DNA of 64,000 bases from Takakia lepidozioides (Eukaryota; Plantae; Bryophyta): assembly GCA_030704615.1 (NCBI GenBank), contig CM060731.1:28830001-28894000 (forward strand). The letters run 5' to 3'. Below are positions 1-63,347 of the stretch, piece by piece (position 1 is the stretch's first letter; every line of letters begins with the position of its first letter). The notes below the pieces were generated by a model. That model was not told the origin of the DNA. It saw only the letters and a list, made by a program, of their open reading frames with translations, and made no database searches. Both the position numbers and the translations under genes were made by a program.

Positions 1-96
1 AGGCCGAATAGGTGTCCGCGGTTATAGGTGAGCACATGCAGAAGCGTGAGCAGAATTCTGCTCACGGAATTTTCTGCTCACGGTTTAGCAATCCCC

Positions 97-520
97 GAGG
101 CCCTGCAACTATTTGGCTATTTGGAATAATGCAAAGGGAAGGCTTCAAGTTGGACAGTATCACCTTTATATGTGTTCTCTCTGCATGCAGCCACACTGGC
201 CTACTGGATGAAGAAAGACGCTACTGGGATTCCCTGAGTCAAGATCATGGTGTCACTCTGACAGTAAGTGCACTTTGGCTGCATGGTGGACCTTCTTGGA
301 CGTGCGGGACAACTGGATGAGCAGTGGACCTGATTAATAAAATGCCATCAATCCAGATGCTGTGGTGTGGAAGGCCTTGCTTGGTGCCTGCAGAATCCAT
401 GGCAATGTGGAGATGGCTGAACGTGTGGCAACATCTAGCCTCACGTCGGATGAACAGGATCCGCGACTTATGTGTTGCTATCAAATATCTATGCTGCAGC
501 TGCTAGGTGGGATCCATCTG
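97..520 (+). pseudogene. 3' fragment of a PLS-class PPR gene with E1/E2 extension motifs, frameshifted
   Basis: Pieces in different frames: EALQLF..IMQREGFKLDSITFICVLSACSHTGLLDE (P2/L2 motif), WKALLGACRIHGNVEMAERVA (E1) and ATYVLLSNIYAAAARWD (E2, about 464-514). Several frameshifts; no DYW domain seen downstream. Confidence 0.85.
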
Positions 521-828
521 AGTAGCAGAATGTTCTCCCTGCATTTTCCCAGCGCCTAACAACAAGCTGTATGCCCCATCACATTTCACATGAGCTTGTT
601 CTTCCTTGTACGACAATTTGACACTTAGAATAGTTTATATAGCTACCGGGACATTAAATTAAGAATCCAAACTATTTGAAATCTACACCAATTGCCCATA
701 AACAAATGGTCGAAGGGGTTAGAAAGGAGCCAGGTCGCTGCTGTATTGAGGTATTTTATCAAGACAATCATTTTTTATCAAGATAATAAAGCTAAATGTT
801 GAGAAACTAAAGGATGGCCAACAGTCAA

Positions 829-3602: not shown

Positions 3603-6600
3603 CTAGGAGAAGGCTGCCGCCTTGCAAATTGGGCACTGGTTTTTTTGAACAAGCCACTGCTCAATGCATAAAACGTGATAACCATGCCCACAATCGATCT
3701 TCCCCAACTCATCACCCTCCTTGTACTCCTCCTGACAACAACCCAAGCACAAATGCAATGACTCGTTTGTCAGCAACTTGACACATCTAACACAGGGACA
3801 ACTTGGAGAGATGAGACTCTGCAACTGCTGTGGTTGTTGCTGCAGCGAGAGCCTTCAAAAGCCCTGGCTCAAGAAGCCAGGGCACATATTCTAAAAGCAT
3901 GCAACACTTCATACCAGACTGCGGTATATCTGTGATCTGCGTCCATAACTTTAACTTTCAAACCAGATTTTTGCTAGGAAAAACTTTGATACAATTGACC
4001 GAAGCATGTGTGGTTTTAGGTGCTATCACTGCTGTACAGACTGCTTCCAGCTACAATCCACAACTCTATTTTAACTAAGGTACCTCCCACCATGAAATTG
4101 ACCCAATCACAAAACAGGTACTACAACGAAGTTCAGACTCATATGAACCTGGCAGATGCTGCATTTGATGTCACATTCTTGGGACAAATGAGTAGCCACC
4201 ACATCCAGCGAGTAGTAAAAACTCCGTTTCAATCGGTGCATCAACATCTCAGTACTCACTCCAGTACTCACATTGCCTATTCTCTCACCCAAAGCAAGCA
4301 ACTCCTGCACTCACATAGCCACCTTCACCAAATCAGTTCTATCATGCTGAGTGCTGACCACTGCTCCCCACTGCACAGCTGAATACAAAGGTTGATTATG
4401 AAGTCGTCCTATTGAGGAGCAGACTATTCCTCTTGCTATAATTGAGAATCTGCAAAATCCCAAAACCCATTTTTGATGACAAACTTCCTTCATGACTGGA
4501 AGAATTAAAATTAAAAGGTTCTAATACAGCCTTTCCTCAAAGCCCATACTCATCCTTTTGACTACAGTTGGAAAATGAAACAATATTAACAACCTGGACG
4601 GGCCTCACTCACAGCCCATCTATTTCTGAGGGTTCGCCCCCATGTGAACTACCACAATTCTATTGGACACAGCACACTGAAGCGGGCGACTCACACAGTC
4701 TGGGCCACATTCTAAGGCTCCATCCAAATGTTTGGCCAAATACCAGATTGTAAACCTCACCCTGACTCCTCCCAAAGCAGGCATACATAGTGTCTGCTTT
4801 CTATCTGGAAGGAGGACCCTTCTACTAAAAATGTAGCTAACTTGTACCAGATTCTGGTATGTGGAGCATCAGCGGTCTGATCTGGCTTGTCTTCGATCCT
4901 TCACTGGACTCGAGCTTAGTGTTGTTGATCCACAAAAAGGGTACAGGCCCCCATTACCGTGCAGCAGTGTGAGAGCTGCCCACACTTTATGGAAAGAATG
5001 TGGGCTATGTGGATGCACAAAGCTCCCAAATTGCATGTCCTGACCTTACGCTGTTTACCATAGGGGAACACAAATAGGAGGTAGGAGAAAATTGGACCTC
5101 ATAAGACATGTTGTCGACATCAAGGCGCAGGTCGCTATGCTGGTCATGCAGACCCATGCCTCCAAATAAAAGTGTTGCCTCCAGCATCAGAAGTTGCTGC
5201 AGAGGTCATAGGCTCACCTTATCAGCAAGAATCAGCTTCCACAAAACCTTGAGGTTCTCACATGAGAACTCATAATCTTCAAAAAATCTGAAAACAATGG
5301 CATCACTACTTCCATAGCAATAGACTCCTCTGCATTCCAATTTGGAGATCTGCAAGCTTAAACTCGGGCTGATCAATGCAGCATCCAAAGATGATGCTCC
5401 ATGTATATATTAAGTTGGATGAGATTCCCATCAACGAAGCAACCAGAGGATATACTCAACTGCATCTTTCAAGAAGAAAGCACAATTGCTCACTAGAAAC
5501 ATGAGAAATATATATCAGGCCCTGGGGGGACAAATATGACTCACCTCATAAGTAAGATCTTCGTCTCTCTCAACACGCTCCAGTGCCAATAGAATCTGTT
5601 TAACAAGCAAATCAAATCCAAAACTTTGATGGATTATATAGCCAACTACCATCAGAAAAGAGAGTTTGAAAGGTATACAATTCTCCTGTGTAGTATTTCC
5701 AAATTCTTTCAAATATAGACGATATGTGAGATCTAAACGACATGAACGTCATCTCTTAGTAAGACAGTCAAGAACAAGCAAGTTCTCCAGACCATGCAAC
5801 TGTATGACTAAAAGAAGTAGCTCAAACCTTGTAAGACTCAAAATCAGGGTGCATCAATCCTAGATCTTGCCTACTTGGACAACATGTCAGCTTTAACACC
5901 ACTTGCAACATCAACAAGTGAGCTGTTGCTCTCCCAAGTCGCCGAGTAATCACACAACAGTGACAAAGTGTAGAAACATGAAGTGACCAACCTCTGCAAG
6001 TCCCTCTGCAACTAGTCGAGGCTGATGTGGTCCATCACCTGCTGACAGCTGTAGACCCCGAAAAGGCATTCCAAGCAGACTTTCTGCAGCAGCTGAAAGA
6101 CCTCTTTCACTGCGAACTCTCACTGAAGATCCCCTTGGCAACAACGACCCTGGAAAGAGACTTGCTGGTGATGGCAGTGTATCCATGGAGGTAGCAAATG
6201 ATGAAGAGACTGAAGGAGGAGAAGGAGGTATGCGAGAAGGGGCCGGTCCTGATGATGACAGAGTGGGCAGTAATGTGTGTACACTGCTGCCCTGAGATCT
6301 GCTCCGCAACACCGGGGGGTGTGGAGGAGGTCGTGAAGGTGATGGCCCTGAAGTGGCTGCTGAATTTGCAACTGTTGGCAATGAGGAGGAGACAGGGTCT
6401 GCAAGCAAGGGAGAAATAAGAGAACTGGTGGGGTCCAAGTTGTTGGGATTGATGCCACGATTCCGAAGTCTGCTCTCAGTTGCAACTGCAGCTCCAAGCT
6501 GATTGGCACTGGAGGCACTGGTCACCAAACTACGTGTGCTACTGCCCATGTATCTGTGTGAAAACCGTTCCCCTATACTAGTCGAGCCAAAACTGGCGTC

Positions 6601-8241
6601 CCTGCGTCTCAGGGATGAAGAGCTGCCACTTCTGCCACTTCCAATCAAAGAACTGCCACCCCGGCGGTCAGCCAGCACCCGATCATACAGAAGGTTGCTA
6701 GAGGAATTGCTCTCATCTGCATCCATGGAACACTCAGCTGGTGATGCTCTCCCAGCACTCCAGCTTTCAGGCTGTAGGACTGGCATGGCCCTGCGCACAG
6801 TCCGGGCGAACTGGGGGGCCTGTGAAGCTCCTTGCTCCAACAACACCACTCCAACTGCTCCACCACGAATGTTTCTTTGAGAACTGGAACCTGCACCAGC
6901 GCTCCCCACCACAGCCTTCCCAGGACGGCCATCCTGGACAGCTTCAGCATCGACTGCCTCTCTCATGGAGAGCCCCCTGCTAGTCCACGGCTCCTCCAAA
7001 CCATTTGCCATGGCTGGCAGTTCACCACCTCGGTGAAGTGGTGTTGCCTCTCCCGACATTGACAGGGAGGGTACAACATCAGAAGCAGACGTGCAGCCTG
7101 GAATGCCTGTGCTGTGCCTACTAAGACTGCTACCTCCAAAAATTCCACCGTAGTTCTCCCGAAAAGCAGAAGGGTGAGGGGAGCCATTTCGACAAAACAG
7201 ACTACCTGCCACACCAGGTGTACAGCTTTTTCTCTTACAAGAAGAACTTCTGGAACTGCTACTTGGGTTACTACGACTACCAGCAGCATTTTCCAGGCTC
7301 CCTAGGAAACTCCCTCTCAAAGATGGTCCGTCTGAAACATAATGATGTGCATCACTGCTGCAGGCTGCTTGACTATTGTAAAGGCCCTCACTCCTAATAG
7401 CACCTGATGAAAATGCCTCGGTTGGACCAGAAAAGTTGCTACTGCTGCTGTGGTAGGCTTGGTCATCCAGACCTTGCTGATCCATGAAGAGAGAGTGGGA
7501 CGTCATACTTCCACCTACCTCGCCTACCCTTCCTTCATCACTACCATTCCTGCCTCCATGATAGGCACTGCTTGGACCTGCTAGAGCTTGTCTATCACCC
7601 ACAGGTGGCAATCCTGCGCTGCGACTTCCCACATTCTCCATGACATGCCCTCCAGAACTCCCTAAAAAGAACTCAGAGGTGCTGCTCAACCCAACTGGCA
7701 CTCTCCCAGCCAGGAAATCAAGACTGCTGTTCACTGAGCGACCTCCCATTTCCAACAAGGAATCTGTACTACTGCAAGGGTGTCCATGGCCTGGGAGGAT
7801 GTTATCCTCTTGTGACAAGCCCAGCTGTGTGCTGAGACCCATTGCAAAGTTTGCTTCCGCATCCATGCCTACAGACTCTGATTCTGTCTCATTAAGACTG
7901 CCCCCAAAGCTCTGTAAAACATTCCACTGCCCTTGCAATGATTCATGATGAGGTCTCTGCACCCTGCGAGATCCCGAGGAGCGGGCAGCCACCAGCTTCG
8001 GAGACATTTGAGATGGCTTTCGGGCAGAGGGCCTGCTAGACTCTGGACTTTTGCCTGCTTCCTGGTTACAGACCCTTGCTGACCATGATTCCCCAGCTTC
8101 TTCCAACCTAGTCAGCCGGCTATTGCTGTTGCTCCCACTGCTGCCCCCACTACTGCTAGGCTGGTGATGCATATCTGCAGAGGACCAGCAGCTCCCTCCC
8201 ATGTGTGGAGCACCCCTTCTTGAGTCCATCCCCTCATCCAT
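3603..8241 (-). CDS. RING-H2 E3 ubiquitin ligase, CTL family (MBR1/MBR2/RHG1A/HIP1-like), about 894 aa, 5 coding exons
   Basis: Exons 8241-5992, 5595-5545, 5196-5098, 4304-4149 and 3731-3603, all with GT-AG phase-0 introns, join into one ORF. Contains DQHSDLRLDVDNMSYEELLALGERIG and the C3H2C3 RING CSICQEEY..CGHGYHVLCIEQWLVQKNQCPIC after a long Ser/Gly-rich N-terminus. Confidence 0.93.
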
Positions 8242-14458: not shown

Positions 14459-17400
14459 GGGTACTAGGCCCAGTCATTGCGCATGACCCTTCACTGCGCA
14501 GGTGAGGTGGCACCTTAATATGCGCATCTGGCTATATCACTACGCACTTTTGGACCAAACCCATATTGCTGGAAGATTCTACTACATTGACCAATAGAAT
14601 AGTTTGTTTCTCCGAGTTGTATATTTTCACATTGACGTGTACTAAAAAACTGCAGAGTTATATCATATTCAGATTACACTAAGATCACAGCTCATGACAA
14701 CTGAACTTGATTAAGAGCATTTGAAGCTTGCAGCCAGAATAAAGACAAGGATGATTATGGGCATAAAGAAAGAAAAGCCATATGGCCAGGAGCGATCAGG
14801 CCCAAGACACGTATCAGGGTAATATAAAGACTAGCGCTGATTCTGAAGATCAGAAAGCACAACAAGCTGTGAGTGTGGGCATATCACTTCTTTTTGCAGA
14901 TAATCATTAGTCGCACTTGTTTGATCTGTGTAGGGAAGGTAGACTCTTACAATCCTAGATCACATTGCAAGTGTAAACTAGTAACTTATGGCTATCTCTC
15001 CCTGCAAGATGTTGTTAGAGCACAAGCTTTAAGGTGTCGTTGTGAACAGAAGCGCATATTACCTGCTTGGATGTGTAGCAACAACTTGAAAGAGAAAAAT
15101 TCAGAATAGATTATATAGCTCTATTATACTGTAGGGACAGAGAGAAATTAGAATGGATGCAGCAAAACGTAGGAGGGTATTAGCTCGACAACCAACCAGT
15201 CCATAACCTGACCAAAATTATGGAAAAGCAAGCTCTCCAAATCAGATCTGTGCACTAGAAAGAATCCAACGACGTCAGAGATTACGATCACAATCGGCCA
15301 GAAAAAATACAGATCAGCTTGCAACCTCGGGCACTAATGCTGGCAACACTAACTCTACGACAAGATCATTTCGACGTCCTATTCAAAATGCTAAAAGAGG
15401 ATGTTGGACAGAAGCAACAATGTCAAGTGCAATTACAGACATTGAGAATGGGTTCATGAGCATTAGAAAGGTAGGCCGATTGTACGAGATACCTGAATCA
15501 AGTATTAGAGCGTGGATGGAAGGAAAATTCCATACCAAAAAATCGGGTGCAGCAACTGTTCTCACAAGTGAAGAGGAAAGTGCACTTGTCAAGTGGATTT
15601 TGGAGATGCAAAGGAGAGCACATGGAATCACAATCCCAATTCTTCGTAGCAAAGTTGCTGAGATAGTCATGGACAGAGACACCCCTTTCAAGGATGGTGT
15701 TCCAGGACGACACTGGTGGGAGATTTTTCTCAAACGACATCCAGAAGTTTCAGTTCGAAAATTTGATGCCATCAACAAAGAAAGAGCTGCTACTATGCAA
15801 CGTGTTGTGGTCGAAAGCTTCTATCGAGACCTTTCTGTATGTATGCAAAACATAACTACCCACCTTCGAATATTTGGAACGCTAATGAAACATGTTGTGA
15901 GGCTGGAAGGAGTTGTAGATCCAAGGTCTTGGCACGAAGGGGATCTAACAATGTTTACAATACTGTGCCCACCAATCGAGAACATATTAGTGTTTTGGTG
16001 TGCGTGAACGCAGCAGGTCGATCAATTCCAAACCTCTATTTATTCAAAGAGGTACGAGCAAATGTTGAATACATTGAACACTGTGAAGATGGTGCCCAAA
16101 TGGCTATGGCCAAAAAAGCATTCATGACAACTGACGTTTTTCTTTACTGGCTCTTTCATTTCAAACGGAATATTCCTGGAGGTGTTAACTAAGGAAATCG
16201 TCATTTGCTTTTAGTGGATGGACATGGATCGCACGTTGCATTGGACGTAGCCGAGAAGGCAGCAGAGATGGGATGAAAAATTTTGTTACTACCTCCACAC
16301 ACTTCACATAAACTTCAGCCACTGGATGTAAGCGTTTTTGGTCCATTCAAGTCTTATTTTAGCAAAGAATAAAACAGCTACGTAACAAACAAGAGAAATG
16401 ATGATGTACGAAAAAATGTACTTGCAGGGCTGGTTGCTAAAGCTATGAATCAAGCTTTATCACTTGAAAACGTGAAATCAGGTTTCAGACGAACTAGAAT
16501 TTGGCCTTTTGATGCTAGCAGACAAGAGCAAAAGTATAGTGTGGTGGAGATGTTTGGTTCTACAGAGATGCAGGACAATCCGACAGATGAGGAGCAACAT
16601 CATGAGAATGACATGGAAGAACGGGTAAATTTTCTTTCTCTATGTAACACTATAGTTTTCAAATTATATAGATGGTGTGGATAAAACCCTAGAGAAACTA
16701 TATATTGAAGTCTAACTATTTGCTCCACTCTTCACAGATAATTGATGTTGGAGATGCACAAGAGCACGACAATTTAGATGCATGAGCTGAAGGTGTTAAT
16801 GTATGAATGGCTGAACTACCATTAGCCTTACGCAACGATGATATGGATTGTGATGTTGCTATGGAGGCGTCATATCCCTACTATCCAATGTTGCCACCAG
16901 ATATTTTTGGCAACGTGAATCATGAAAATGTTATGGATGAGCCCTATAGTCCAACATTGCCACCAGAGATCTTCGGCAATCTGGATGGAAATGTTATGGA
17001 GGAGCAAGCTGAAATGTGCTTCCCACAAATCGAAGCAAATGAAACGCATGAGAATATCCATTTGCTTCATAACAGTGAGTTTAGTGCATTCCGTCCTTAC
17101 TGCATCAATAGAAATGGCTGAGACTTATTGCATGCTTCTGTCAACAGGAGTACTAGTAATATAAACAGAGAGTCGAATTGGGCACAACCGCCGGCCCTCA
17201 CAAATATGTGGCCACAAGGTTCTATCAATGAGGACCTAACTAATGGTACTATCGTTGAGCATCATGTGGAGATTGTAGATAGGTCTCTTTCTGCAATATT
17301 AAATCTCCCTAATGTTCAGCCGCCTAGAACAATCAGAAGGAGCAAGTTGATTACTATTTCAGAGTACATCGTTGAACTCAAAGCAACTTGAATGCTCGAT

Positions 17401-18300: not shown

Positions 18301-19269
18301 GCTTGTTTTAATTAGTGGCAGCTCTTTTAGGCCGTCGTTTGTTGCGGCCCTTTGCCTTGAGGGCAGGGGGGGTCGGGACACAAGAGGGGCTGCCCCTGTA
18401 GTGGGGGCAGCGGCAACAATAGGTACATGGGCTGAAGCACCCTTGAGTGCCCAAAGCACTCAAGGAGATGGAGGCGCTCATTAGGTGGAGGCCCGCACAC
18501 CGGGTTGCGGTGGGGGTGGTTCCACGAGGGGTTGTGGTAGCTTGTAGGTCTTAGTGGGGGTGACATAGGACTCACCATGGGGCGGAGACCTTGTGGTGGG
18601 AATTGTGGGGAGTCTTGGGACTCATCACGGTCCAATGGGGCCATGGTAGGTGGGCCAAGACTCACCGCAACTCATCACCGGGAGTCAAGGGTCACTAGAA
18701 GAGAAACCGGCTTTTTCCACACTTTTGATGTGGAATCAGCCGCAGTCCACACCTGCCATGGGTGTAAGGAACGACTAGTGCTTTCGGACACCCCGTGGAC
18801 GGCCTGGCTCTCGGGTGGCCCTGTGGAAAAGTCCACGGATGGTTTTTTCCACGGGAGGCTTTTTCCATGGGTGAGTTTTTTTCACGGGGTGCATGGTGAC
18901 ATGGCCGATGGCATAACTGACATGGCACAGTGTGAAAAAAGGCCAGTGTGGCATGTTTCACGGCGGATTTCACATCTTGAACAAGCCACTATGCGACACG
19001 TGTCATATTTCACACCTTCGACAAGTCACTATGCAACACGTGTTCGTTCCTGTGTGGTGGTACACATTAATTAATTATTATTTGCTTTCCAATATTAAGT
19101 TTGAATATTAATGGATTTAATTTTTTATTATTATTATTATAGGAAAAATGGACAGTGGCCTGGATGAGAACATTATTAAATAACAAAAATATTAAAATTA
19201 GAATTTTAGAAATTATATTTATTCGCTCAGATACCAAAACACACCCTTTGCAGGGAAGGAGAGTTTGCC

Positions 19270-19872
19270 TTAGTATCTATGCTGAGTTGCATCTCCTACT
19301 CTCTGTAATCTAATAGATATTCACCTTTTTCTCTCGGTTGTCCCACCCTTGACTGCGGTCAGAAAAGCATTCATTCCACACCTTCTCCTCATCTCTGTTA
19401 CATGTTTCTGGATACTTTCGTATTGTCACTTTGGTAGTATCATGTCAAAATCACTCCAAACTATGTACCATCTACCCAGGCAGGTTTCTTGTAGCTAACC
19501 CTCCACAGGGAATCATAAGTAATCTGGAGCTTGAAATCTGGCCCTCTTGGATGACACTCTATCCCTGCTCCTTCAGCTATCCATGCATCTGCACAGATCA
19601 TGCATACATCCTTGCATTGCTGTTAGCAGCTGACAATGACAGCCTAGATTTGTTCCAGCAAACACCCAACTAATCTCATCACACCGGTTTCTATTCTCAA
19701 TTGCATCTACCACTCTGTAATCCAAAGGCATTTACCTTCCAAGATAGTTGTCCCAACATTGACTGGGGTCATAAAAGTATTTATTCCACAGCTTTTCCTC
19801 TCTGTTACATATTTCAGGATACTTTCCTATTGTCACTTTGGCAGTGTCATGTCAAAGTCACTCCAAACTATC
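19270..19872. repeat. Diverged duplication with about 408-bp offset inside the CACTA element
   Basis: GATACTTTC(G/C)TATTGTCACTTTGG(T/C)AGT(A/G)TCATGTCAAA(A/G)TCACTCCAAACTAT at 19411 and 19819, with similar upstream sequence. Confidence 0.75.
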
Positions 19873-20079
19873 AAAGGTTCGCTCAACCAGCTAACTTGCA
19901 GAATTCTTAAAACATGAAAATTTAGGGTGATTCTGATAAGAGGGGAAAACAGAGTGAAATGGGTTGAAGAAGGTACCTTGATTAGCATTGCCTGATTTTA
20001 TCAATTGTGCCGCTGCTGCTGCGGCTTCCAGTTGACCATCTACCCATGCAGGTTTCTTTGAGCTATTTTTCCACGGGGA

Positions 20080-20600
20080 ATCACCCCTTCCCGCATCATT
20101 GCTCATAGGTCTCCAAAGCCTCCATCCGCGCCCTTGCTGTGCATATCCTGCAATCATCGCACTCCACGACACCACATCTCGTTCAGCCATACTGTCAAAC
20201 ACTTCCTTTGCATCCTCGATGCACCCACATTTGGCATACATGTAGTCCACCAGGGCAGTGTTCAGAATGACATTGGGTACAATTTCAGATTTGACGATGT
20301 CACCATGGACCTCTTTGCCCTTTTCCAGAGCTCCCAGCTTGCACATGCATTACAAACAAATGTGATGTGGTTGGGCTTCACCCCTTCGCGCAACAGTTGC
20401 TCATAGGTCTCCAAAGCATTCCTACCACACCCATGTTAAATCCTGCCAACATTATATTCAACGTGATCAAAGTTCGTTGAGGCATTCCGTTGAACACTCG
20501 GTGTGCATTCATGATGCTCCTGCACTTAACATACATGTTCACAAGGGGGTCGAGGAGAAAAACACTTGGTGCGAATCCACTTTGGATAATGTGACTGAAA
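20080..20600 (-). pseudogene. Diverged PLS-type PPR fragments
   Basis: LGALEKGKEVHGDIVKSEIVPNVILNTALVDYMYAKCGCIEDAKEVFDSMAERDVVSWSAMIAGYAQQG with frameshifts on both sides. Confidence 0.8.
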
Positions 20601-20754
20601 TGCTCCTTGGTTTAAAGGGTAGAGCCTCTTTCAGTCTGCCTGCCTCACAAAGCATCTTCATATGCCCAGAAGAGCAAGAAGAGGCATTATGGACTCCTTC
20701 TCTTGATCCTCTTTTAGAAGCTGTGGTATGATTGAGGTGCCTGATTTAAATCAG

Positions 20755-23700
20755 GGTTGCCAGGCCTGCAATGCACACAAATATGATGTGGTCGGGCTGA
20801 ACCCCTTCCCCCATCATTTGCTCATAGGTCTCCAAAGCCTCCATCCCACGTTCCTGTTGTGCATACCCTGCAAGCATCGCACTCCATGACACCACATCTC
20901 GTTCAGCCATAGTGTTGAACACTCCCTTTGCATCCCCGATGCACCCACATTTTGTATACATGTCCACTAGGGTATTGTTCAAAATGACATTTGGTACAAT
21001 TCCAGCTCTGAAGGTGTCACCATGGACCTCCTTCCCCTTTTCCAGAGCTGCCAGGGCAGTGTTTCGAATGACATTAGGTACAATTCCCGCTTTGATGATA
21101 TCCCCATGCACCTCTTTGCCCTTCTCCAGGGCTGCGAGGCCTGCAATGCATACAAACATGATGTGGCCGGGCTGAACCCCTTCCCCCATCATTTGCTCAT
21201 AGGTCTCCAAAGCCTCCATCCCACGTCCCTCCTGTGCATACCCTGCAAGCATCGCACTCCACGACACCACATCTCGTTCAGCCATAGTGTTGAACACTCC
21301 CTTTGCATCCCCGATGCACCCACATTTTGCATACATGTCCACTAGGGTATTGTTCAGAATGACATTTGGTACAATTCCAGCTCTGAAGATGTCACCACGG
21401 ACCTCCTTCCCCTTTTCCAGAGCTGCCAGGGCAGTGTTTAGAATGACATTAGGTACAATTCCCGCTTTGATGATATCCCCATGCACCTCTTTACCCTTCT
21501 CCAGGGCTGCCAGGCCTACAATGCATACAAACATGATGTGGCTGGGCTGGACCTCTTCCCCCATCATTTGCTCATAGGTCTCCAAAGCCTCCATCCCACG
21601 TCCCTGTTGTGCATACCCTACAAGCATCGCACTCCACGACACCACATCTCGTTCAGCCATAGTGTTGAACACTCCCTTTGCATCCTCGATGCACCCACAT
21701 TTTGCCTACATGTCCACTAGGGTATTGTTCAAAATGACATTTGGTACAATTCCAGCTTTGAAGGTGTCACCACGGACCTCCTTCCGTTTTTCCAGAGTTG
21801 CCAGGGGAGTGTTTCGAATGACATTAGGTACAATTCCATCTTTGATGATATCCCCATGCACCTCTTTGCCCTTCTTTAGGGCTGCCAGGCCTGCAATGCA
21901 TACAAACATAATGTGGCCGGGCTGGACCCCTTCCCCCATCATTTGCTCATAGGTCTCCAAAGCCTCCATCCCACGTCTCTGCTATGCATACCCTGCAAGC
22001 ATCGCACTCCACGACACCACATCTCGTTCAGCCATAGTGTTGAACACTCCCTTTGCATCCCCGATGCACCCACATTTTGCATACATGTCCACTAGGGTAT
22101 TGTTCAGAATGACATTTGGTACAATTCCAGCTCTGAAGATGTCACCACGGACCTCCTGCCCCTTTTCCAGAGCTGCCAGGGCAGTGTTTAGAATGACATT
22201 AGGTACAATTCCCGCTTTGATGATATCCCCATGCACCTCTTTACCCTTCTCCAGGGCTGCCAGGCCTACAATGCATACAAACATGATGTGGCTGGGCTGG
22301 ACCTCTTCCCCCATCATTTGCTCATAGGTCTCCAAAGCCTCCATCCCACGTCCCTGTTGTGCATACCCTGCAAGCATCGCACTCCACGACACCACATCTC
22401 GTTCAGCCATAGTGTTGAACACTCCCTTTGCATCCTCGATGCACCCACATTTTGCCTACATGTCCACTAGGGTATTGTTCAAAATGACATTTGGTACAAT
22501 TCCAGCTTTGAAGGTGTCACCACGGACCTCCTTCCGTTTTTCCAGAGTTGCCAGGGGAGTGTTTCGAATGACATTAGGTACAATTCCAGCTTTGATGATA
22601 TCCCCATGCACCTCTTTGCCCTTCTTTAGGGCTGCCAGGCCTGCAATGCATACAAACATAATGTGGCCGGGCTGGACCCCTTCCCCCATCATTTGCTCAT
22701 AGGTCTCCAAAGCCTCCATCCCACGTCTCTGCTATGCATACCCTGCAAGCATCGCACTCCACGACACCACATCTCGTTCAACCATAGTGTTGAACACTCC
22801 CTTTGCATCCCCGATGCACCCACATTTTGCATACATGTCCACTAGGGTATTGTTCAAAATGACATTTGGTACAATTCCAGCTCTGAAGATGTCACCACGA
22901 ACCTCTTTCCCCTTTTCCAGAGCTGCCAGGGCAGTGTTTCGAATGACATTAGGTACAATTCCAGCTTTGATGATATCCCCATGCACCTCTTTACCCTTCT
23001 CCAGGGCTGCCAGGTCTACAATGCATACAAACATGATGTGACTGGGCTGGACCCCTTCCCCCATCATTTGCTCATAGGTCTCCAAAGCCTCCATCCCACA
23101 TCCCTGTTGTGCATACCCTGCAAGCATCGCACTCCACGACACCACATCTCATTCAGCCATAGTGTTGAACACTCCCTTTGCATCCTCGATGCACCCACAT
23201 TTTGCGTACATGTCCACCAGGGTATTGTTCAAAATGACATTTGGTAAAATTCCAGCTCTGAAGGTGTCACCATAGAGCTGCTAGGGCAGTGTTTCGAATG
23301 ACATTAGGTACAATTCCCACTTTGATGATATCCCCATGCACCTCTTTGCCTTTCTCCAGGGCTGCCAGGCCTGCAATGCATACAAACATAATGTGGCCGG
23401 GCTGGACCCCTTCCCCCATCATTTGCTCATAGGTCTCCAAAGCCTCCATCCCACGTCCCTGTTGTGCATACCCTGCAAGCATCGCACTCCACGACACCAC
23501 ATCTCGTTCAGCCATAGTGTTAAACACTCCCTTTGCATCCCCGATGCACCCACATTTTGCATACATGTCCACTAGGGTATTGTTCAGAATGACATTTGGT
23601 ACAATTCCAGCTCTGAAGATATCACCACGGACCTCCTTCCCCTTTTCCAGAGCTGCCAGGGCAGTGTTTAGAATGACATTAGGTACAATTCTAGCTTTGA

Positions 23701-23780
23701 TGATATCCCCATGGACCTCTTTGCCCTTCTCAAGGGTTGCCAGGCTTGCACAAGCATTGCAATGCACACAAACATGATGT
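20755..23780 (-). pseudogene. Tandem array of about 8 x 375-bp (125-aa) PLS-type PPR units, disrupted
   Basis: Unit landmarks at about 20912, 21287, 21662, 22037, 22412, 22787, 23162 and 23517. Each unit is P (VVSWSAMLAGYAQQGRGMEALETYEQM..QP) + altered L + S (NTLVDMYAKCGCIGDAKGVFNTMAERD). TAG stops at 21706, 21982, 22456 and 22732; 20-bp deletion near 23272. Confidence 0.93.
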
Positions 23781-25520
23781 GAGAGGGCAAAACAGGTTGA
23801 AATGGGTCAAAGAAGAAGATGCCCTCACCACATTGTCCTTGAGGTTGCGTCATGACTTGACCGACCATCAACCCAAAATGACCTCTTGTTTGTGTCTGTA
23901 GTCAGGTAATGTCAGATTGGTCTGTGAGATCGAACCACCACGGTGTAGCTGAGTAGGCAGAGATTGAAACACGGCCTGCTATGACCAAGCTAACTCTCCC
24001 AAGAACGGCAAGCTCGCAAGAATGTTGCGAGCTTCTCTTCGTCTCATCTCCTCCTCCTCTCCTCCTTCCTGCATCATTTGCTCAACGCCTCCATCCCACG
24101 CCCCTGCATATCTTGCGATCATCGCGTTCCATCCCTCAGCTACATGGTGTGGCGCATGGAGACAAAAGAAAAACGCCAAGTCCCAGCCCTCCTCTGTGTT
24201 CACGATTACCCTAATGGGCAACCTTATTAGCAACTTTTTGACTTTTTAACCTTTTGCACTTTGATTCATTCTAGGTCAGAGGCTAAAGTCCTGCTACCAG
24301 ACTTGTCTAGAAAACCAAAACACCACGTAGACAAACATTTGATAATTGTAATAAAATATATTACCATTGGGCTGGTTTGAACACTTGTTAGTAGGGTTTT
24401 TTCGAAATATTCTGGTTTTCTTTGATGTGTGAGATGACACAGTCCAAGCATGTCACATAAACAAGGAGTTCAACGTAATGATGATGCAAGTGATTTGTGG
24501 CAAAAAGTGTAAATCATGCCTATGCCTATTTGTCCTAGTTGTGTCATAGGTTGCAACGGAACGGGGCCACCTTTGAATACGATCCCCATGCTCATTTCAC
24601 CAAGGGCATTATAGACTTCATAATGGAGAGATTGAAAATGGGGTGTATTCTTCACTTGCTAGTAGCCCATCGTGCAGATTTCTAAACATGAACATGAAGT
24701 TCATAATCATTTTCCAAGGGCATCATTCTCAAACTCCCCATACACCACAATCAGTGGAAATAATTGTATGTTCCCATTTCACACATGTGTGTAACATGCC
24801 ATGTAAACTAAGCCAACCCCTGCCACGCTCATGGTTGTTTTCACACCGTTCTTGCCTGGGGTGTGGACCACATGTGAGACACCCCACAGTTAGGGCATAT
24901 TTAGACCCACACCTTGGCCCGTGATAGACCCGTGATAAAAGCCGTGGAATGTGCCAGGTGTGAGATGACAGAGCCGTGGAAAAAGCCGGTTTCTCTTCTA
25001 GTGGGTCTTTGTGGTGGTTCGTCATAAAATGACTGGGTTGTTTGTGAAACCCCCGCGGACAATCACAGAAGTATATATAGGGAGTAGTAACCCTGAGAAC
25101 GGTGCAAGCCCGTTGGTGGCCAAAACTAGTGAGTAAGCGTGCGAGCCGGAAAGCGACCAAGATGTGGGGAGCTGTTTCGGACTGCCAACAACCAAAGGGA
25201 ATTTCCACTAGGCCCAAATTGAGCGAGGGTCTTGTAGAGAAGTAAAGGGGGACCGTTACGTCCCGGTGAGCAGCTGAAGCTCCGAGTTGGCCCGACAGCC
25301 AGTTTGGGAGTTAGGCGTGCGCATCAAAGCGAGTAACTATGACTTGAAGGGGAGCTTACCGAAGTGAGGTGTGCGACATTGTTTCTGCAATATCTTTGAA
25401 ATTCTGCTTCCAGCTTTTCTTCCTTTTCTCTTTGAATGTTGGCTCTGAGTGGAACCTCTTTCCTCTGCCTTCATGGATTTTTTCCTTATTCTTAATAAAA
25501 TTTCCACTGCAATCCCCATG

Positions 25521-26039: not shown

Positions 26040-26530
26040 CGGTGGCCCAAGTGTAGTCTCCTATGTATCCAAGTGCATCCCCTTTGTCCAAGTGCAATCT
26101 CCTATGTATCCAAGTACGTCTATCATGTCCAGGCCCAAGTGCGACCTCTAGGGTAGCCTCTGTCGTTGGCCCATGTATGAAAAATTGAAATCTAAGACCA
26201 AGTGTAATTTCCTATGTATCCCTGTGTGTCTCTTATGTCGTGGCCCATCTAATTAGCCCAAGTGCAATCTTCTACATGTATCCAAGTGCATCTCCCATGT
26301 AGAGGCCCAAGTGCGATATCTTATGTATCCAAGTGCGTCTCCCATGTGTGTCTCCTATGTCGAGGCCCATCTAAGCCCAGTGTGGAATCTCTTATGTATC
26401 CAAGTACGTTTCCATGTCAAGGCCCATTTATTTATTTATTTTTCATGAATTTATTGAGTAGTAATATCCAGTCATTATCGATATGTCTCTCGTCTTTAGG
26501 GTAGCCTGTGCCATTAGCCCAAGTGTCCAA
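26040..26530. repeat. Degenerate tandem repeat built from GGCCCAAGTG and C(C/T)TATGTATCCAAGT motifs
   Basis: Motifs recur at irregular spacing (TATGTATCC at about 26062, 26103, 26213, 26322, 26393); probably subterminal repeats of a transposon. Confidence 0.7.
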
Positions 26531-26894
26531 TGCCAAATGCATTTTTTTTCCACGTAGCCTACGACCAGATTTAAACCGGAGACCTTTCCCTTAATATCTC
26601 TCCTGTCGAGGCTCCAACCTTTGTCCCAGGAATGCCCACTTTGCAATTTTTCATAAATTTCCAGCGACCCAAAGTACTTGAAATTCCACATCTCCCACAC
26701 CGCAAAGTCCAAAAATCGTGAGACCAAGCCCGTGCACCCCTCCTCGTCGAGGGCTTTCCAACGGGACCAAGCACTTAGGGTGGGCCCCCGCAGTTTGGGA
26801 CATCTCAAATCTACAAAACAAACGTCTCGATTCATATATTGATGTTTTGTATACTGGTTCTTTCTGAAATTTTCCTTAGTCCTTGTTCTTCTAC

Positions 26895-27120
26895 GATGGT
26901 GGACCTTCCAGCGGACTGGGCAGACTCTACAGGTGGACTCAGAGTCTACGCTGCACATAGAGTGGACCCTCCAACGGACTCTGCAGAGTGGACTAGACTG
27001 CAAGGTGGACCCTCTCCAGCGGACTCTGGGTCCACCGGACTGATCTGGAGAGTCGGTGGACCCTCCAACAGACTTTCCAGAAGAGACTAGACTATCCAAT
27101 GGATCCTTCATCCTGGTGGA
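26895..27120. repeat. Degenerate tandem repeat GTGGACCCTCC..CGGACTCTG
   Basis: GTGGAC recurs at about 26900, 26933, 26962, 26988, 27005 and 27056. Confidence 0.65.
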
Positions 27121-28347
27121 TGGGCGCTGGGCTTCTAAGCTCACCGAGGGGGGTAGTGGCAGGGGCCATAGGCGCATTGAAGACGCTATTATCTTAAAAT
27201 GAGAGCCCATATAGTTATATGCACAGGTACGGCTGGAAATGAAAATTCAAAAAATCAATTTTATTCATTACAGTTTTTTTTTGGACCAAAATGTTCACTT
27301 TCTCTAAAAATAAAGCCAAAAATAAAACAACACACCAATTTAGAGATAGCCTACACATTGCGGTTGCCTATCTATGAGTTGGGACAAATCACAAAACCAG
27401 TAAATACATAATTGCTTTTGGGAGATAATTTTAAGATGTTAAATACTTCAATATTGACACTGAATGTTGAAAACCATTTAAATATAATTGATTTCTTGAG
27501 ACACAAGAAAAATAAGTATTGGGCTCTACCCTTCAAGTTAAGAAATATATTAGCTTGAGTCGAACCTCGTTTCTCAGACTTCATGGCGTTTGTCAGGTTA
27601 TTTTTTCCTTACCTTTCACTAAAATTTTCAGGGCCACTGTCCCTGTTCTATAAAAATTTTAAAAAGAAAAAAGAAAAATCAGAAGCATCAAAAATACAGA
27701 ATGAATAATGTCTTAGCTGTTGATTATCTTATGGAAGAGTCTTCCATCTTTTGTCATCTTTTGTCTTCCATTGTCGTTCCGTCAGATGCGTTTCAACCAA
27801 TCAAAACCGTATGAAGATTTTGAAGATATGTCCAAAACATAATACCAGTGTTGTATTGGTACACACATTAATGAACTAAGATGTCAATGTCGTTGATGAG
27901 CAGTGTTTTTTCGTTTCACGGATTCTATCTACCTCCTCTTGAGGGAAAAACACGGTCACATCCGGCACAAGATGGACCTCCAACTCCGAAGCAAGGCCCA
28001 TCTCATATGCTTGTGATGCAATGAGGTTGCGCGCCTGGGCAAAGACTCGTGGCTGCACGTACTATTAACGTTAGTATGATGGGTTCTTAGAGACTCACCT
28101 TTGCCGCATCTGCAAGCCCATTTCTCTTGTAGTGGTCCTCAACAATGTGTGCTTGACGCATGACTGGTCGAAACCCCGATAGTGTCCGTGCCCAACACTT
28201 CTTGCACCAACACTCCTTCGGCGGGGGTTCCTCAAATGTGGGCCGATTGGGGCCTTGTGGCTCTGGACCTGGAGGCCTAGGGCCTTGAGGCGGCAAAGGA
28301 AGCGGAATGGGATGCCGGGGGGGGGGGCTTGTTCAGGCACATGTGGT

Positions 28348-28546
28348 TTTTCCTAAAGGGAAACACCGGGGAGTGACGGCTCACAAATCAGGCCCCTTGA
28401 TAGTGAGAGGAGAACCTCGCCATGAAGGCGTCTACATGGGACCGCCCAAGGGAAGGAGGTGAAGTACATACACACACGTCCGTCAAGATAGGATTTGACC
28501 CCAAAATCATTTGGGTGGCACTCAGTGCACTATCCAACTGAACTGT
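28348..28546 (-). mobile_element. tRNA-derived SINE, most complete copy in the window
   Basis: Minus strand: A-box-like AGTTCAGTTGG, B-box-like GGGTCAAATCC, body, then tail GGGGCCTGATTTGTGAGCCGTCACTCCCCGGTGTTTCCCTTTAGGAAAA shared with the other copies. Confidence 0.7.
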
Positions 28547-28926
28547 TTCTGTTCTTTTCTCATTTCTCCATAATCGCTGGAGGGCCACATGTAAATTCGA
28601 CCCCGCGCCCATGTGGCAAGAACAACAAGGTGACAAGGTAAGAAAAGTGGCTGTATAACACGTGGCACTTTTTGACAGGTCCACCTAGGTTAAGTCAGGC
28701 TCATGATATTTAACTACTGGTGCTTTCTTGCGACTTTTTTTTGTTTTTACCCCCTCCTAATTCCTTTGTACAAGTAGCTGACCCGTTTTCCAGGTCGAAA
28801 TCTGGCAAATTTTTGCCAGAAAAAAAAGCCTGAATTTCAAGGTTTTCTAAAGCTGAAATTTTGAGGGGTCAGATCTCTTTTCTTCTCTAAACCACAATCA
28901 TGCCTTTTCCAATAGAGGGTGGTTAA

Positions 28927-57097: not shown

Positions 57098-57692
57098 TGT
57101 CAAGGACAAGAGCATAACTGAACACAAACAACACATCATACTAGAGGTACAAAACTAGACAAGAAGTCAAGGTCGGCGTGGCCGAATGCATGATAGGTAT
57201 ACATGAATCAAGATGATCTTTATAACAATGGACAAGAGTACAAGATACTAGAATTTGACTTAGATACTGGAATGCTGGAAACTAGACTGAAGTACTAGAT
57301 ATTGGAAACTGGACTAGAGTACTGGAAGCTGGACTGGAGTACTGGGACTGGAAACAATAGTAGCTTGAACTTGTGTACTAGATACTGGCTACTTAGAAGC
57401 TTCCCCGGAGGTTTCTTGCTGGAGAAGTTTCCAAGATTAAACAAATGTTTCTTGATGGAGAAGCTTCTTTAAACAAATGAGGTATTTTGATGGAGAGGTT
57501 TCCTCCAAAGGAAGCTTCCTAAGCAGTTTTTCAAGTTACTCTTGGTAATTTGATAAATTCACGGTAATTTGGTAAGTAATGATAAATCATAGTGGATCAT
57601 GGTAAATCATGGTAAATCATGGTAACTTTCGGTAACATGGTAACTTGATAACTTCTGGTATTGATAAGTTCTTCTGGGCTATGTCCATGACA
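57098..57692 (-). repeat. 3' LTR, 595 bp
   Basis: Direct repeat of 62838-63347; contains internal ACTGGA-based and GGTAAATCAT tandem motifs. Confidence 0.9.
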
Positions 57693-58339: not shown

Positions 58340-61300
58340 ACTCTTGGACTTTGTCAGAGGCATTGGTGAGATTGGATGAAGGTTCTCACGTTCATTTGTT
58401 GATGTCGTAGTCTTTCTAATGTACGAAATACTCAAGACGTTTATACTTGATACGAGAGTCTAGGACTTCGTCGACTTCATACTCAATTTTCTGATTGACT
58501 TCGATTGGTGGAGGTGGTACGGAAACTCTCCCTGGAATATTCGATGGATGATACAACTCCAATAATGAAACATAAAAGACTGGATGGATGCGCATACTTC
58601 GTGGAAGTTCAAGCCGAAAACTGACCGGATTTATTTGTCGAATAATTTTGAATGGTCCCAGGCGTTGATAATCCAACTTCCTTGATGGTCGCGAGTTTTG
58701 TATATCCCGTCGAAGAAGCCACACACGATCTCCGACCTTGAACTGGGGTTGGAGTTGGCGACGTTGATTTGCATACTCCTTGTATTGTTTTTGAGCTTCT
58801 GCAAGATGGGATGTAAGCTCCTTGTGAATCGTAGCAAGATGAGTAGCAGGGCTTCCAACAGTTTTCATGTGGAAATGGTTTGCTCGAGGATGATGACCAT
58901 AATTGGAGAAAAATGAAGTTTGTTTGGTCGAAGAATGTATAGTGTTGTTGTAGGCAAACTCAGCCAATGACAGAAGGTCCGTTCAATTATCTTGGTGATA
59001 ATTTATCGTACAGCAAAGATACTGCTCCAAATCTGGTTTACACGTTCGGTTTGACCATCAGTCTGTGGATGATTAGCTGTAGAGGTTGATCTCGGTATCC
59101 AATATGTGAAATAATCCCTTCCAGAAATTTGATATAAACTGTGGTTCTCGATCAGATACGATGTCATTCGGGAGTCCATGAATGCGGTAGACATTATTGA
59201 GGAAGAGTCTTGCAGTTTCCTCGCCGGTAACCGTCTTATTACATGGAATGAAATGTGTCATCTTCGCAAAACGAGCTACAATAACAAGGATTGAATCGGT
59301 GGTCTTGGAAATTGGAAGGTCCGTAATAAAGTCCATAGACACGGATGACCATGGACCCTTAGGAATGGGTAATGGTTGAAGAAGGCCGTAAGGTCAATGT
59401 CGTGGTCCATTCGTTCTAGCACACGTGTCGCAAGATTTTATGAATTCTTTCACGAGTTTCCACATCTGCGGCCACCAATAGTCCCTGGATATCAATTCCA
59501 TTGTTTTGTTGAAGCCGAAATGTCCTGCAGCCGGAAGATCATGACATGTTTGAAAAATTCGAAGTCGTGTAGGTCCTGGAGGTACATAGAGAAGTCCCTT
59601 GAAATAAAGTAAGTCATCTTTGAATTCAAAGTCGTTTGTAACATGTGGGTTGTCTCTAGATCGATTTAGTTGACTTCGTAGTGTCGTAGCAAAATGGTCG
59701 CTCTTCCGTACTTCCTGAATCTCCTTTATGATCTCTGCATCGTCATAGGTGGACATGGATAACATATTCAATTGGAGATTTGTTGGTTTCAAGATGATGG
59801 ATTTTTGTTGGTCAAAAGCTGCATCCCCTTCCTTTGGCGCAAGATACGATCGTCGAGAAAGAGCATCTGATTTTCCTTGAAGATGTCCGGGACGGTAGGT
59901 AATAACAAAATCAAACCTTGCTAATGACATACTCCATCTCGCTTGACGTCGATTCAAAACACGAGCACTCATAAAATACTCGAGGTTTTTGTGATCAGTA
60001 TAGACAGTGACCTGATGTTAAACTTCTTCCAATAGATGACGCAACTCCTCAAAAACATCGATAATCGCTAGAAGTTCTTTATCATGGATTTCATAATTGA
60101 TCTCCGCAGCGGAAAATTTGCGAGAACGAAAACCAACAGGGTGAAGTCGGCCATCTGTACCGTATAGAGAAAGTACCGCGCCAAGTGCAAAGTCCGATGC
60201 ATCTGCTTTAAAAAAAAATGGTTTAGATGGGTCTGCATGTACCAATATTGGAGCCGTTGTAAATGCCTACTTCAGCCTTTCAAATGCTTGGTCAGCATTT
60301 TCGTCCCATACAAATTTGTCCTTCCATGTGAGTCGTGTCATTGGTACAACAATTTTGGAGTAGTCCTTGATGAAGATTTTATAGAAATTTGTAAATCCTA
60401 GAAAATATTGTACATCTCGGACCAAAGATGGTTTAATCCACTCGATGATGGTTTGTATTTTCTTCTAGTCCATAAAGACTCATTTGTCGGAAATAATGTA
60501 GTTCAAAAATTCGACTTTAGATTGGTGAAAAATACATTTTTCCAACTTGGCATATAGTCTTTTTTCCCTCAATTTATCAAGGACAAGGCGTACATGGCGA
60601 CCATGTTCTTCTTCACTCTTTGAAAATATCAAAATGTCGTCCAAATAGATGACTACAAAGTCATTTAAAAATTCTCGAATGATGTCATTCATCATGTGTT
60701 GAAAAATTGCTGGAGCATTTATAAAACCGAAAGGCATAACACTGTATTCGAAATGTCCGTACTTTGTGCGAAAAGCAGTATTCCATTCGTCTCCTTCATT
60801 TATTCGTACAAGGTTGTAAGCTCATCTCAAGTCGATCTTTGTGAAAAAATTTGCTCGTCCAAGTTGTTCGAGGAGTCCGGAAATCAGCGGTAGTAGGTAA
60901 CGATTTTTTATAGTGACTTTGTTGAGCCCACGATAGTCCACACACATGCGTAATGATCCGTCCTTCTTCTTCACAAATAAAATAAGTGCTCTCGCGGGGG
61001 ATTTCGAATGTTGAATGAAATTCTTTGACAAATTTTCATCAATGTATTCGCGTAAAGTAGCCAACTCCGTCTGAGATAAATTGTAGATCGGGTAGAATTG
61101 TGGTTGAACTCCTTCTTGCAACTCAATTGCACAATCATAAGGTCAATGTTTTGGCAACATGTCTGCATTTTTCTTCTCGAAGACATCATTGAAATCTTGA
61201 TATTGAGTAGGTAATGTCGAAGTACCTTGGTCTGTTGTGGTTTTGATCGGAGTCGCATAAAGTGCAAATGTCGCGTCTTTCTTCGTAGCTCTCATGAAGG

Positions 61301-62825
61301 CTCTAGCTCCAAGAAACAGGGGTTGAATACCTTTGGTACTTTTGCATTTTTGTCTTGCCGAAATTTTTCGTAATCGCCAGTCGATGTCAGGATTATGAAG
61401 TATACACCAAAGAAGTCCAAGGATCACAGGATTCGTTGGAGACTGGATGACATTGAAAACAATCCGTGATGCTTGATTTTTAAGCTTCACTTCAAGGGGT
61501 CGAGTTTCATGGTCAATATTTCCTGATATTAACGGTCGTCCATCGATGACTTCAACAGGGGTCGAGAATTTCTTTCTTACGAGCGTTAAATTGTGTTGCT
61601 TCGCAAAGTCTTTGTCAATAAAACAAGCTGAAGCGCCCGAGTCCAAAAGTGCTTCTATGGAGATATCTCGATTTTGCATCCTGATTTTTACTGGAACTGT
61701 GAAACAAGGTACAGGGTTTGGAGGTAGAAAGAGACATTTTTTTTTTGAGGAATTTGGAGTGTCCAGCCGCATGGTCCCTACTGTGACTGGACATCTTCGT
61801 TTTTCGACCTCCTCGTATGGAACACTTGAGTTGTGCCCCGAACTTTGAATCTTCTTTTGTTATGGCAGTTTAATGCTATGTGATCATCTTCTCCGCAATA
61901 AAGGCATAATCCATTCGAGCGTCGTCTTTGTTTTTCTTATGGCGTCAATGGCTTGAATCAGACAGCATCAATCTGCATAGCATCATTACCGGATGTCTGA
62001 TGGATCGTTGTATTTGGTGCCGTAGTAGCAGCGGCATGGTCCGTCGTCGACCATCCAGATCACTTCTCTTGACGTCTTTCGATCAAACGATTATCGCATG
62101 CAATGACTTGGGTGATGAATTCGCTCAGTATACTCACGTTTGACATTGTCAGCAACAAATCTTTTACATCCTCTTTTAGGCCACATCGAAACTGACTAAT
62201 GAGGCTCTTCTCTTTCCAGTCGAGATCGCACGCAAGTTGTCGAAATTCGGCAGCATAAACGGAAGCAGGACGTGCTCCTTGTCGAAGATTTTGCATCTTT
62301 GTCTCTGCAACTCTCTCTATATCATTATCTCCAAATGTTGCAGTGAACTCGGACATGAATGCTTCAAAATTGTATAGTAAATGCAAATTTTTCTCTAATA
62401 GCGGTGCAAACCAAGATAGGGCAGTGCCTGATAGAAGGGTGCCCACGAATCCCACTTGAATATCTTCATCAGGGAAGCGTTGTGGATGTAATCGTAAGAA
62501 CAATCGTACTTGTTGAACAAAACCGCGAAATCTTGATCTCGTCCCATCAAATTTCTCGGGCATGCTGACCTTTGGTTCCCTTGTAATCTGTTAAAGATTT
62601 GGAGGAACCGTTGCAGTAGGATTTGTTGTAATAGAGACTCGTAAGGTTGAAGATCTATTGTTCGACTCCTTCAACTCTGAAATTTGTTGTTGCAAATTGT
62701 TGAGAGCGTTGCCAAGATCTTGAGACTGATCAGCTTGTAATTGGGCAGTAGAGGCACGAAGTTCTTGCATCTGGAACTGAAGACTCTACAATATGGCGAC
62801 CATTTCCACAAATGTGCCTTCCATC
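58340..62825 (-). pseudogene. gag-pol of the chromovirus with many stops and frameshifts
   Basis: gag EPKVSMPEKFDG; zinc knuckle CLYCGEDDHIALNC; protease ALLDSGAS; [17 protein letters not shown] and YLDDILI; RNase [12 protein letters not shown] and [11 protein letters not shown]; integrase [18 protein letters not shown] and HPQTDGQTER; GPF motif; chromodomain EYEVDEVLDSR. Confidence 0.93.
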
Positions 62826-62837
62826 TTAACTAACCTG

Positions 62838-63347
62838 CGTGGCCAAATGCATGATGTGTATACATGAATCAAGATGATGATCTTTATAACAATGGACAAG
62901 AGTACAAGATACTGGAACTTGACTTGGATACTGGAATGCTGGAAACTGGACTGGAGTACTAGATACTGGACTAGAGTACTGGAAGCTGGATTGGAGTACT
63001 AGGACTGGAAACAAGAGTAGCTTGAACTTGTGTACTAGATACTGGCTACTAAGAAGCTTCCCTAAGAAGCTTCTCCTATGGAGGTTTCTTGCTGGAGAAG
63101 TTTCCAAGATTAAACAAATGTTTCTTGATGGAGAAGCTTCCTTAAGCAAATGAGGTAGCTCGATGGAGAAGTTTCATCCAAAGGAAGCTTCTTGAGCAGT
63201 TTCCTAAGTTACTTTTGGTAATTTGGTAAACTTCCGGTAACTTGATAAGTAATGATAAATCATGATAGATCATGGTAAATTACGGTAAGTCTTGATAACT
63301 TGGTAACTTCTGATATTGGTAAGTTCCTCTGGGCTATGTCCGTGACA
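62838..63347 (-). repeat. 5' LTR lacking about 80 bp of its inner end
   Basis: Matches 57178-57692 but has no counterpart of 57098-57177. Confidence 0.85.

Follow-up and report, generated by a model that had tools for sequence, protein, structure and literature searches.

Some early-diverging land plants possess thousands of PLS-class pentatricopeptide repeat (PPR) genes, and the mode by which these have spread is debated. A kingdom-wide study has attributed the PPR expansion in early-diverging land plants to retroposition, with Takakia showing dispersed duplicates that carry limited retroposition features (MBE 2026, PMC13386178). Transposons that take up pieces of host genes are also on record, and Pack-CACTA elements are well documented from Arabidopsis, rice and maize (PMC6379663, PMC8903248). 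Two grapevine Cactavine-5 copies contain, in inverted orientation, a portion of a PPR gene, for which an antisense regulatory role has been proposed (Benjak et al. 2008, PMC2528002). Soybean Tgm-type CACTA elements reportedly mobilise fragments of host genes, and transcription of such fragments can occur (Zabala and Vodkin 2007, cited in PMC2528002). The present analysis concerns a 64,000-nucleotide stretch of the genome of Takakia lepidozioides (assembly GCA_030704615.1, contig CM060731.1, positions 28,830,001 to 28,894,000 of the forward strand), here called the window, to which all positions below refer. Within it, the segment 18693-25003 is likely to be a non-autonomous CACTA (En/Spm-type) element of the Pack-CACTA kind, whose PLS-PPR cargo is dead and has been amplified in tandem, and which is best viewed as a selfish repeat.

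Boundaries and CACTA identity of the element

The segment between 18693 and 25003 is a CACTA-type transposon, and the bracket that delimits it is real. Its terminal inverted repeats (TIRs), at 18693-18720 and 24976-25003, are complementary at 28 of 28 positions, each arm starting with CACTAG, and their outer ends lie 6,311 bp apart. Both ends are directly flanked by GGT, at 18690-18692 and 25004-25006, constituting a 3-bp target site duplication (TSD). When the 28-mer was searched across the window with up to three mismatches, only these two sites were recovered, with none expected by chance. The window as a whole was also scanned for ends of the CACTA/G type with at least 13 of 16 TIR positions matching, which returned six pairs, a number similar to that obtained from shuffled sequence; the 18693-25003 pair is the only one that is perfect and accompanied by a matching 3-bp TSD. 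A second candidate end, at 28121-28134, was rejected, as it has neither a partner nor subterminal motifs and falls within chance expectation. The component parts of the element and its immediate borders are as follows.

18690-18692, left TSD, GGT
18693-18720, plus strand, left TIR of 28 bp, starting with CACTAG
18721-18960, left subterminal region, with TYCACRG repeats in both orientations and a 16-bp repeat in 3.5 copies
19273-20083, internal non-PPR segment holding two diverged copies of one piece, words of which are present in the probably-RNA runs
20074-20730, minus strand, older frameshifted PLS-PPR motifs
20752-23780, minus strand, tandem array of 8.1 units of 375 bp
24040-24150, minus strand, degenerate P-motif remnant, where the depth of the probably-RNA runs stops
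24151-24975, right arm, with no open reading frame (ORF) matching a family and with subterminal motifs near its end
24976-25003, minus strand, right TIR of 28 bp
25004-25006, right TSD, GGT

The subterminal regions share further characteristics with the ends of CACTA elements. Within the terminal 260 bp of the two ends, seven copies of the motif TYCACRG were counted, a density of 13.5 per kb against 0.49 per kb elsewhere in the window (27-fold); they lie in both orientations, with the left end carrying more copies than the right. These motifs are putatively of the TnpA-binding type. The 16-bp repeat of the left subterminal region extends from 18832 to 18888. In addition, a contig assembled from the reads of a public DNA run stops exactly at 25003, the last base of the element, a position at which copies with differing flanks would branch the assembly graph. 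The 56 bp of TIR together with the 3 bp of TSD, and nothing more, may indicate that the element was mobilised recently. Joining the two flanks in silico across the insertion point produced no noteworthy ORF.

No transposase domain was detected with Pfam in the tested ORFs of the element (at least 60 residues), and no autonomous TnpD/TnpA partner was found in the window, where the larger ORFs were tested and no other valid CACTA pair occurs. Since no transposase is encoded, the element could be moved only by TnpA/TnpD-type proteins of an autonomous CACTA element located elsewhere. Judging from what is known of En/Spm, such proteins would bind the subterminal motifs, cut at the 28-bp TIRs and leave the 3-bp duplication. 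By the definition used in packFinder, the element combines a host-gene interior lacking a transposase with a TSD and a length of 6,311 bp, which lies within the range of 300-15,000 bp. A preliminary description of the locus had reported perfect 28-bp CACTA TIRs and a GGT TSD bracketing 6.3 kb without a recognisable transposase, and on both counts the present results agree with it.

Composition, decay and amplification of the PPR cargo

Approximately 4 kb of PLS-type PPR sequence is found within the element, on the minus strand. Searches of the ORFs against Pfam returned the families PPR, PPR_2 and PPR_1, with E values down to 3e-35, and the identity of the cargo to PLS-PPR proteins is 42-50%. 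Most of this sequence forms the tandem array at 20752-23780, in which a 375-bp unit is repeated 8.1 times with 92% matches and to which nothing similar exists outside the element in the window. Downstream of the array in the PPR sense, the older and frameshifted PLS motifs at 20074-20730 include a single un-duplicated P-L-S copy (20083-20337), with 86-88% identity to the array units, and a further copy (20378-20584) with approximately 73% identity. Upstream of the array in the same sense, at approximately 24040-24150, a degenerate P-motif remnant (WNAMIARYAG...) is likely to be the upstream edge of the captured fragment. The remaining interior at 19273-20083 has no Pfam match and contains a diverged duplication, the sequence at 19273-19515 resembling 19687-19871 joined with 20035-20083 at 80-84% identity. 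The captured piece has no visible start region of a PPR gene, nor does the element contain any E/DYW sequence; when four PLS-E/DYW proteins were compared with it by their C-terminal parts, the matches were confined to PLS repeats.

The architecture of the unit was determined by aligning a 308-residue ORF of the array to a canonical PLS protein. Every unit bears 28 inserted residues, in which the back half of the L motif is repeated together with the first six residues of the S motif, and every unit has lost four residues from the first helix of L. The resulting composition is P35 + L32 + 28 + S30, a total of 125 residues, compared to 35-36-31 in a canonical P-L-S; as read from this alignment, the amplified unit is not a canonical P-L-S triplet. 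The two 84-bp copies within a unit are just 78-86% alike, and the oddity of the unit therefore predates the 375-bp amplification. An AlphaFold model of the 308-residue ORF, produced without an alignment, was too poor to be used (mean pLDDT 39.6).

The reading frame of the array is broken by five in-frame stops and one frameshift, with further frameshifts in the older motifs at 20074-20730. Unit 7 has suffered a 20-bp deletion, because of which its first third, as well as the whole of unit 8 (the first in the PPR sense), is read in a different frame. The distribution of the stops also reveals the order in which the array grew. Units 3 and 5 are 99.5% identical, the pairs 2/4 and 4/6 are each 98.1% identical, and all other pairs fall between 93 and 97%. 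A stop arising from TAT to TAG is common to units 3 and 5, and a two-base change from CAA to TAG is common to units 4 and 6, the spacing in each case being 750 bp. The recurrence of the stops at this distance indicates that a two-unit block already bearing both of them was duplicated, and the last steps of amplification are thus DNA-level copying of an already broken, non-coding sequence. Moreover, the minimum numbers of substitutions among units at the first, second and third codon positions are 13, 12 and 16 (p=0.73), and of the variant codons 15 are synonymous and 26 non-synonymous. No mark of purifying selection was found by this measure, and the cargo is a pseudogene evolving near neutrally. 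In its frame, its motif lengths, its missing E1/E2 (DYW) end and its pattern of selection, it departs from a functional gene for a PLS-class PPR RNA-editing factor.

With regard to the preliminary description, which had proposed a Pack-CACTA transposon with an amplified PLS-PPR array and about 3.5 kb of PLS-type coding sequence, the structure of the element holds on every testable feature, as does the PPR content, supported by Pfam and extending to approximately 4 kb. An intact coding sequence was not recovered in view of the stops and frameshifts, the amplified module proved to be aberrant rather than P-L-S, and a function of the cargo is not borne out by its near-neutral evolution.

Taken together, these data are compatible with the following sequence of events. 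Capture may have occurred through aberrant transposition of neighbouring insertions, as in proposals made for Pack-CACTA elements (PMC6379663, PMC13317346), and the captured piece is an internal part of a PLS-class PPR gene, lacking both the start and the E/DYW end. The 375-bp P-L-S module, by then already aberrant, was expanded to eight tandem copies at the DNA level, with growth of the array likely to have proceeded via unequal exchange, replication slippage, or template slippage during the repair of an excision gap. In the final steps, the 750-bp block of two units was duplicated after the stops had arisen. The cargo therefore makes no working PPR protein and drifts near neutrally, and the element is best seen as a selfish repeat spreading dead PPR sequence.

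Read evidence and alternative explanations

Public read collections were consulted for the abundance and possible transcription of the cargo. The stretch is present in four DNA runs of one sample, derived from a single organism, and parts of it are contained in a run labelled as plant metagenome and in several small runs of other studies. In the best DNA run, 34,184 short Logan contigs align to 19250-25249 at a likeness of at least 95%, half of which fit two places, and more than 100 alternative joints occur among the contigs inside the array. Summed word depths in this run range from 3e3 to 7e5 per bin, compared to 64-310 for listed single contigs, and are to be used qualitatively, as such sums do not equal copy numbers. 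The right arm at 24250-24850 has a depth well above that of the listed single contigs, although approximately 4-75 times below most cargo bins. According to these observations, sequence resembling the cargo is present in the organism in high copy number, which supports the dispersal of the cargo only indirectly.

The plant metagenome run tracks the DNA run at a near-constant ratio across all bins, as DNA should. Two other runs (X7 and X8), which are probably RNA by a label that is itself a software guess, behave differently. Their ratios to the DNA run are 3-43 and 0.03-10 per thousand across 19250-24050, and both drop by at least 100-fold over 24050-25249, from which it follows that they are not whole-genome DNA. 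They contain words from the PPR cargo and from the non-PPR left interior, and none from the right arm or the flanking repeat. Cargo-like sequence is probably transcribed somewhere in the genome, although the contigs reveal neither which strand nor which copy is the source, and genuine PPR genes could contribute words. As a separate observation, the right flank at 25050-25249 is among the deepest stretches of the DNA run (summed word depth 6e5, subject to the same reading) and is absent from the probably-RNA runs. The element seems to be inserted into, or next to, a further repeat of very high abundance.

A number of points weigh against the explanation favoured here. Besides the qualitative nature of the word depths and the provenance of the RNA label, a large share of the depth over the cargo may be due to related PPR repeats or genes instead of this family. 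No match to the element sequence was found elsewhere in the 64-kb window, and exact scans of JGI metagenomes, using either a 22-nt piece of the TIR or a 24-nt piece of the array consensus, were blank. Protein searches, word-indexed as well as exhaustive, reached a best identity of 50% in collections that do not include the host proteome. The best of these protein matches are ordinary PLS genes of the lycophyte Diphasiastrum complanatum, which were considered as donors and rejected, their loci sharing with the window only PPR-level DNA similarity (68-78%) and containing no transposons or repeats. Concerning selection, the synonymous share of the variant codons is 37%, compared to 23% expected at equal rates (p=0.04), a gap that transition bias would close or that may be a trace of earlier constraint in the donor gene. 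Some unit pairs also have a low ratio of non-synonymous to synonymous differences (pN/pS, 0.07-0.2), based on very small counts, which can be ascribed to noise or to a trace of constraint before capture.

The physical reality of the element and of its array has to be considered together with these points. Two separate CACTA ends could by chance flank a resident array of PPR pseudogenes without forming one mobile unit, a view that gains from the fact that no second full copy of the exact element was inspected. It is nonetheless highly improbable, given that the 28-bp inverted ends are identical and accompanied by matching 3-bp duplications (1 in 64 by chance), that no partner TIR lies near either end, and that the break in the DNA read-contig falls exactly at 25003. 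Somewhat different is the question of how many units the array really has, as repeats that are 92-99.5% identical may have been collapsed or over-expanded during assembly, leaving a true number that is fewer or more. The near-identity of units 3 and 5 (99.5%) and of the pairs 2/4 and 4/6 (98.1%), as well as the more than 100 alternative joints in the array, are in keeping with such an artefact. Most units, however, differ by 4-7%, a divergence at which a long-read assembly can tell them apart. The sides of the joints are short (20-40 nt), as expected from other copies of a multicopy family, and both ends and the TSD are clean; an error of this kind is accordingly judged quite improbable.

A further group of explanations attributes a function to the cargo. 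It might encode a working PPR-like protein with repeated modules, the stops being removed by splicing or by RNA editing, and the open 308-residue ORF, the low pN/pS of some unit pairs and the cargo-like words in the probably-RNA runs could be cited in its support. This is scarcely credible in the face of five in-frame stops and several frameshifts, the lack of a start region and of an E/DYW domain, the 28 extra residues and the L first helix shortened by four in every unit, and codon positions that are equally variable; identical modules, moreover, would be expected to specify a periodic RNA target, unlike any editing site. A regulatory role is fairly improbable, and would be compatible with the selfish spread of a dead cargo. 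According to this proposal, transcription through the cargo, for example from the transposon end antisense to the PPR sequence, would yield antisense RNA or small interfering RNAs (siRNAs) acting on PLS-PPR genes. Cargo-like words do occur in the two probably-RNA runs, from which the right arm and the flanking repeat are absent, the cargo runs in the opposite direction to the left end, where subterminal motifs are more numerous, and the same regulatory idea has been raised for the PPR fragment of grapevine Cactavine-5 (PMC2528002). On the other hand, the contigs lack strand and origin, so that the words may stem from real PPR genes or from other copies, and the element contains no inverted repeat longer than 28 nt, which speaks against a hairpin precursor of siRNAs. 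The explanation retained is that of a Pack-CACTA element with a dead cargo that was amplified at the DNA level.

Neighbouring features, significance and comparison with described systems

Several other features are present in the window. At its very start lies the C-terminal portion of another PLS-class PPR gene (12-560, plus strand), which is frameshifted, of the P2-L2-S2-E1-E2 type and cut by the window start, with the motifs ...ITFICVLSACSHTGLLDE..., MVDLLGRAGQLDE, LLGACRIHGNVEMAERVA and SNIYAAA. This piece matches the ends of PLS-E/DYW proteins from Diphasiastrum, Sphagnum and Taxus, and the C-terminal parts of the four PLS-E/DYW proteins mentioned above match it at 87-522. Other traces of mobile DNA were also detected. 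An ORF at 15420-16007 (plus strand) with Tc5-transposase and Psq helix-turn-helix DNA-binding domains is probably the N-terminal part of a pogo/Tc5-like transposase. Direct repeats at 57212-57692 and 62876-63347, 88-94% identical and approximately 5.66 kb apart, enclose ORFs with aspartyl-protease and integrase zinc-finger domains at 59394-61772 (minus strand), and together they form a long terminal repeat (LTR) retrotransposon. Inverted copies of a short repeat at 827-923 and 28347-28547, approximately 27 kb apart and with 86-89% identity over 42-56 nt each, may be related to miniature inverted-repeat transposable elements (MITEs). The window further contains an ATG-started ORF of 763 residues (5950-8241, minus strand) in a locally GC-richer stretch (53%), which has no Pfam family, no exact public-contig record and weak protein-atlas leads only, these being RING-type E3-like clusters with a score of 0.78. 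Finally, a 255-residue ORF without a family match (26443-27210, minus strand) lies next to a degenerate array of five copies of an approximately 44-bp unit at 26044-26418, with 66-80% identity, which is located just upstream of it.

The element shows that a DNA-transposon route for PLS-PPR sequence exists, by means of a single case in which the cargo is decaying and expanding in a satellite-like manner and no benefit to the host is shown. A multicopy cut-and-paste family loaded with PPR sequence would represent a second, DNA-based route of spread. On a practical level, such elements can be miscounted as PPR genes, and this constitutes a warning for annotation. A broader proposal is that transduplication by high-copy Pack-CACTA families, rather than retroposition, has been a major route of PLS-PPR dispersal in Takakia, which is considered rather unlikely. 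Were it to be correct, a Pack-CACTA route would explain why the duplicates in Takakia are dispersed yet have limited retroposition features (PMC13386178), PPR gene counts would be inflated by transposon-borne pseudogenes, and new editing-factor genes or PPR-directed small RNAs may occasionally be seeded. In the literature searched, no paper was found that connects CACTA elements to PPR genes in Takakia, in bryophytes or in other non-seed plants.

The kind of gene-capturing element described here is already known, and it is its cargo that is unusual, as well as non-functional. In common with soybean Tgm-type elements, it is a CACTA element carrying host gene fragments. The Tgm-type elements reportedly carry pieces of several genes and give rise to novel spliced exon combinations, nothing of which is shown here. 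In structure, the element resembles the Pack-CACTA elements of Arabidopsis thaliana (Catoni et al. 2019, PMC6379663; packFinder, Gisby and Catoni 2022, PMC8903248), which likewise have CACTA-type TIRs, a TSD, no transposase, host-gene fragments inside and a size within 0.3-15 kb. The TIR begins with CACTAGAAGAG... in Takakia and with CACTACAA... in Arabidopsis, the cargo in the present case is a PLS-PPR fragment with an internal tandem array of eight units, and its mobility is deduced from sequence. When compared to the Pack-CACTAs of rice and maize, which are mostly low copy, the reads in Takakia point to a multicopy family.

As in grapevine Cactavine-5 (PMC2528002), the Takakia locus is a CACTA element that carries part of a PPR coding sequence in inverted orientation. 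Cactavine-5 still encodes a transposase, carries coding sequence together with a 3' untranslated region (UTR), and has no amplification described for it (PMC2528002), whereas the element in Takakia is non-autonomous, its cargo is of the PLS class and one module has been tandemly amplified. The retroposition model (PMC13386178) similarly concerns the dispersal of PLS-PPR sequence in hornworts, Takakia and lycophytes, while in the present case the sequence is carried by a DNA transposon of the cut-and-paste type, bounded by TIRs and a TSD, a route not considered in that study. With respect to its interior, the element is comparable to Tnat1 and Tnat2, which are non-autonomous DNA transposons containing an expandable tandem array (reviewed in PMC10794571). 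The units of these elements measure 60 or 240 bp and are non-genic (PMC10794571), whereas the unit in Takakia is a 375-bp PPR module of genic origin.

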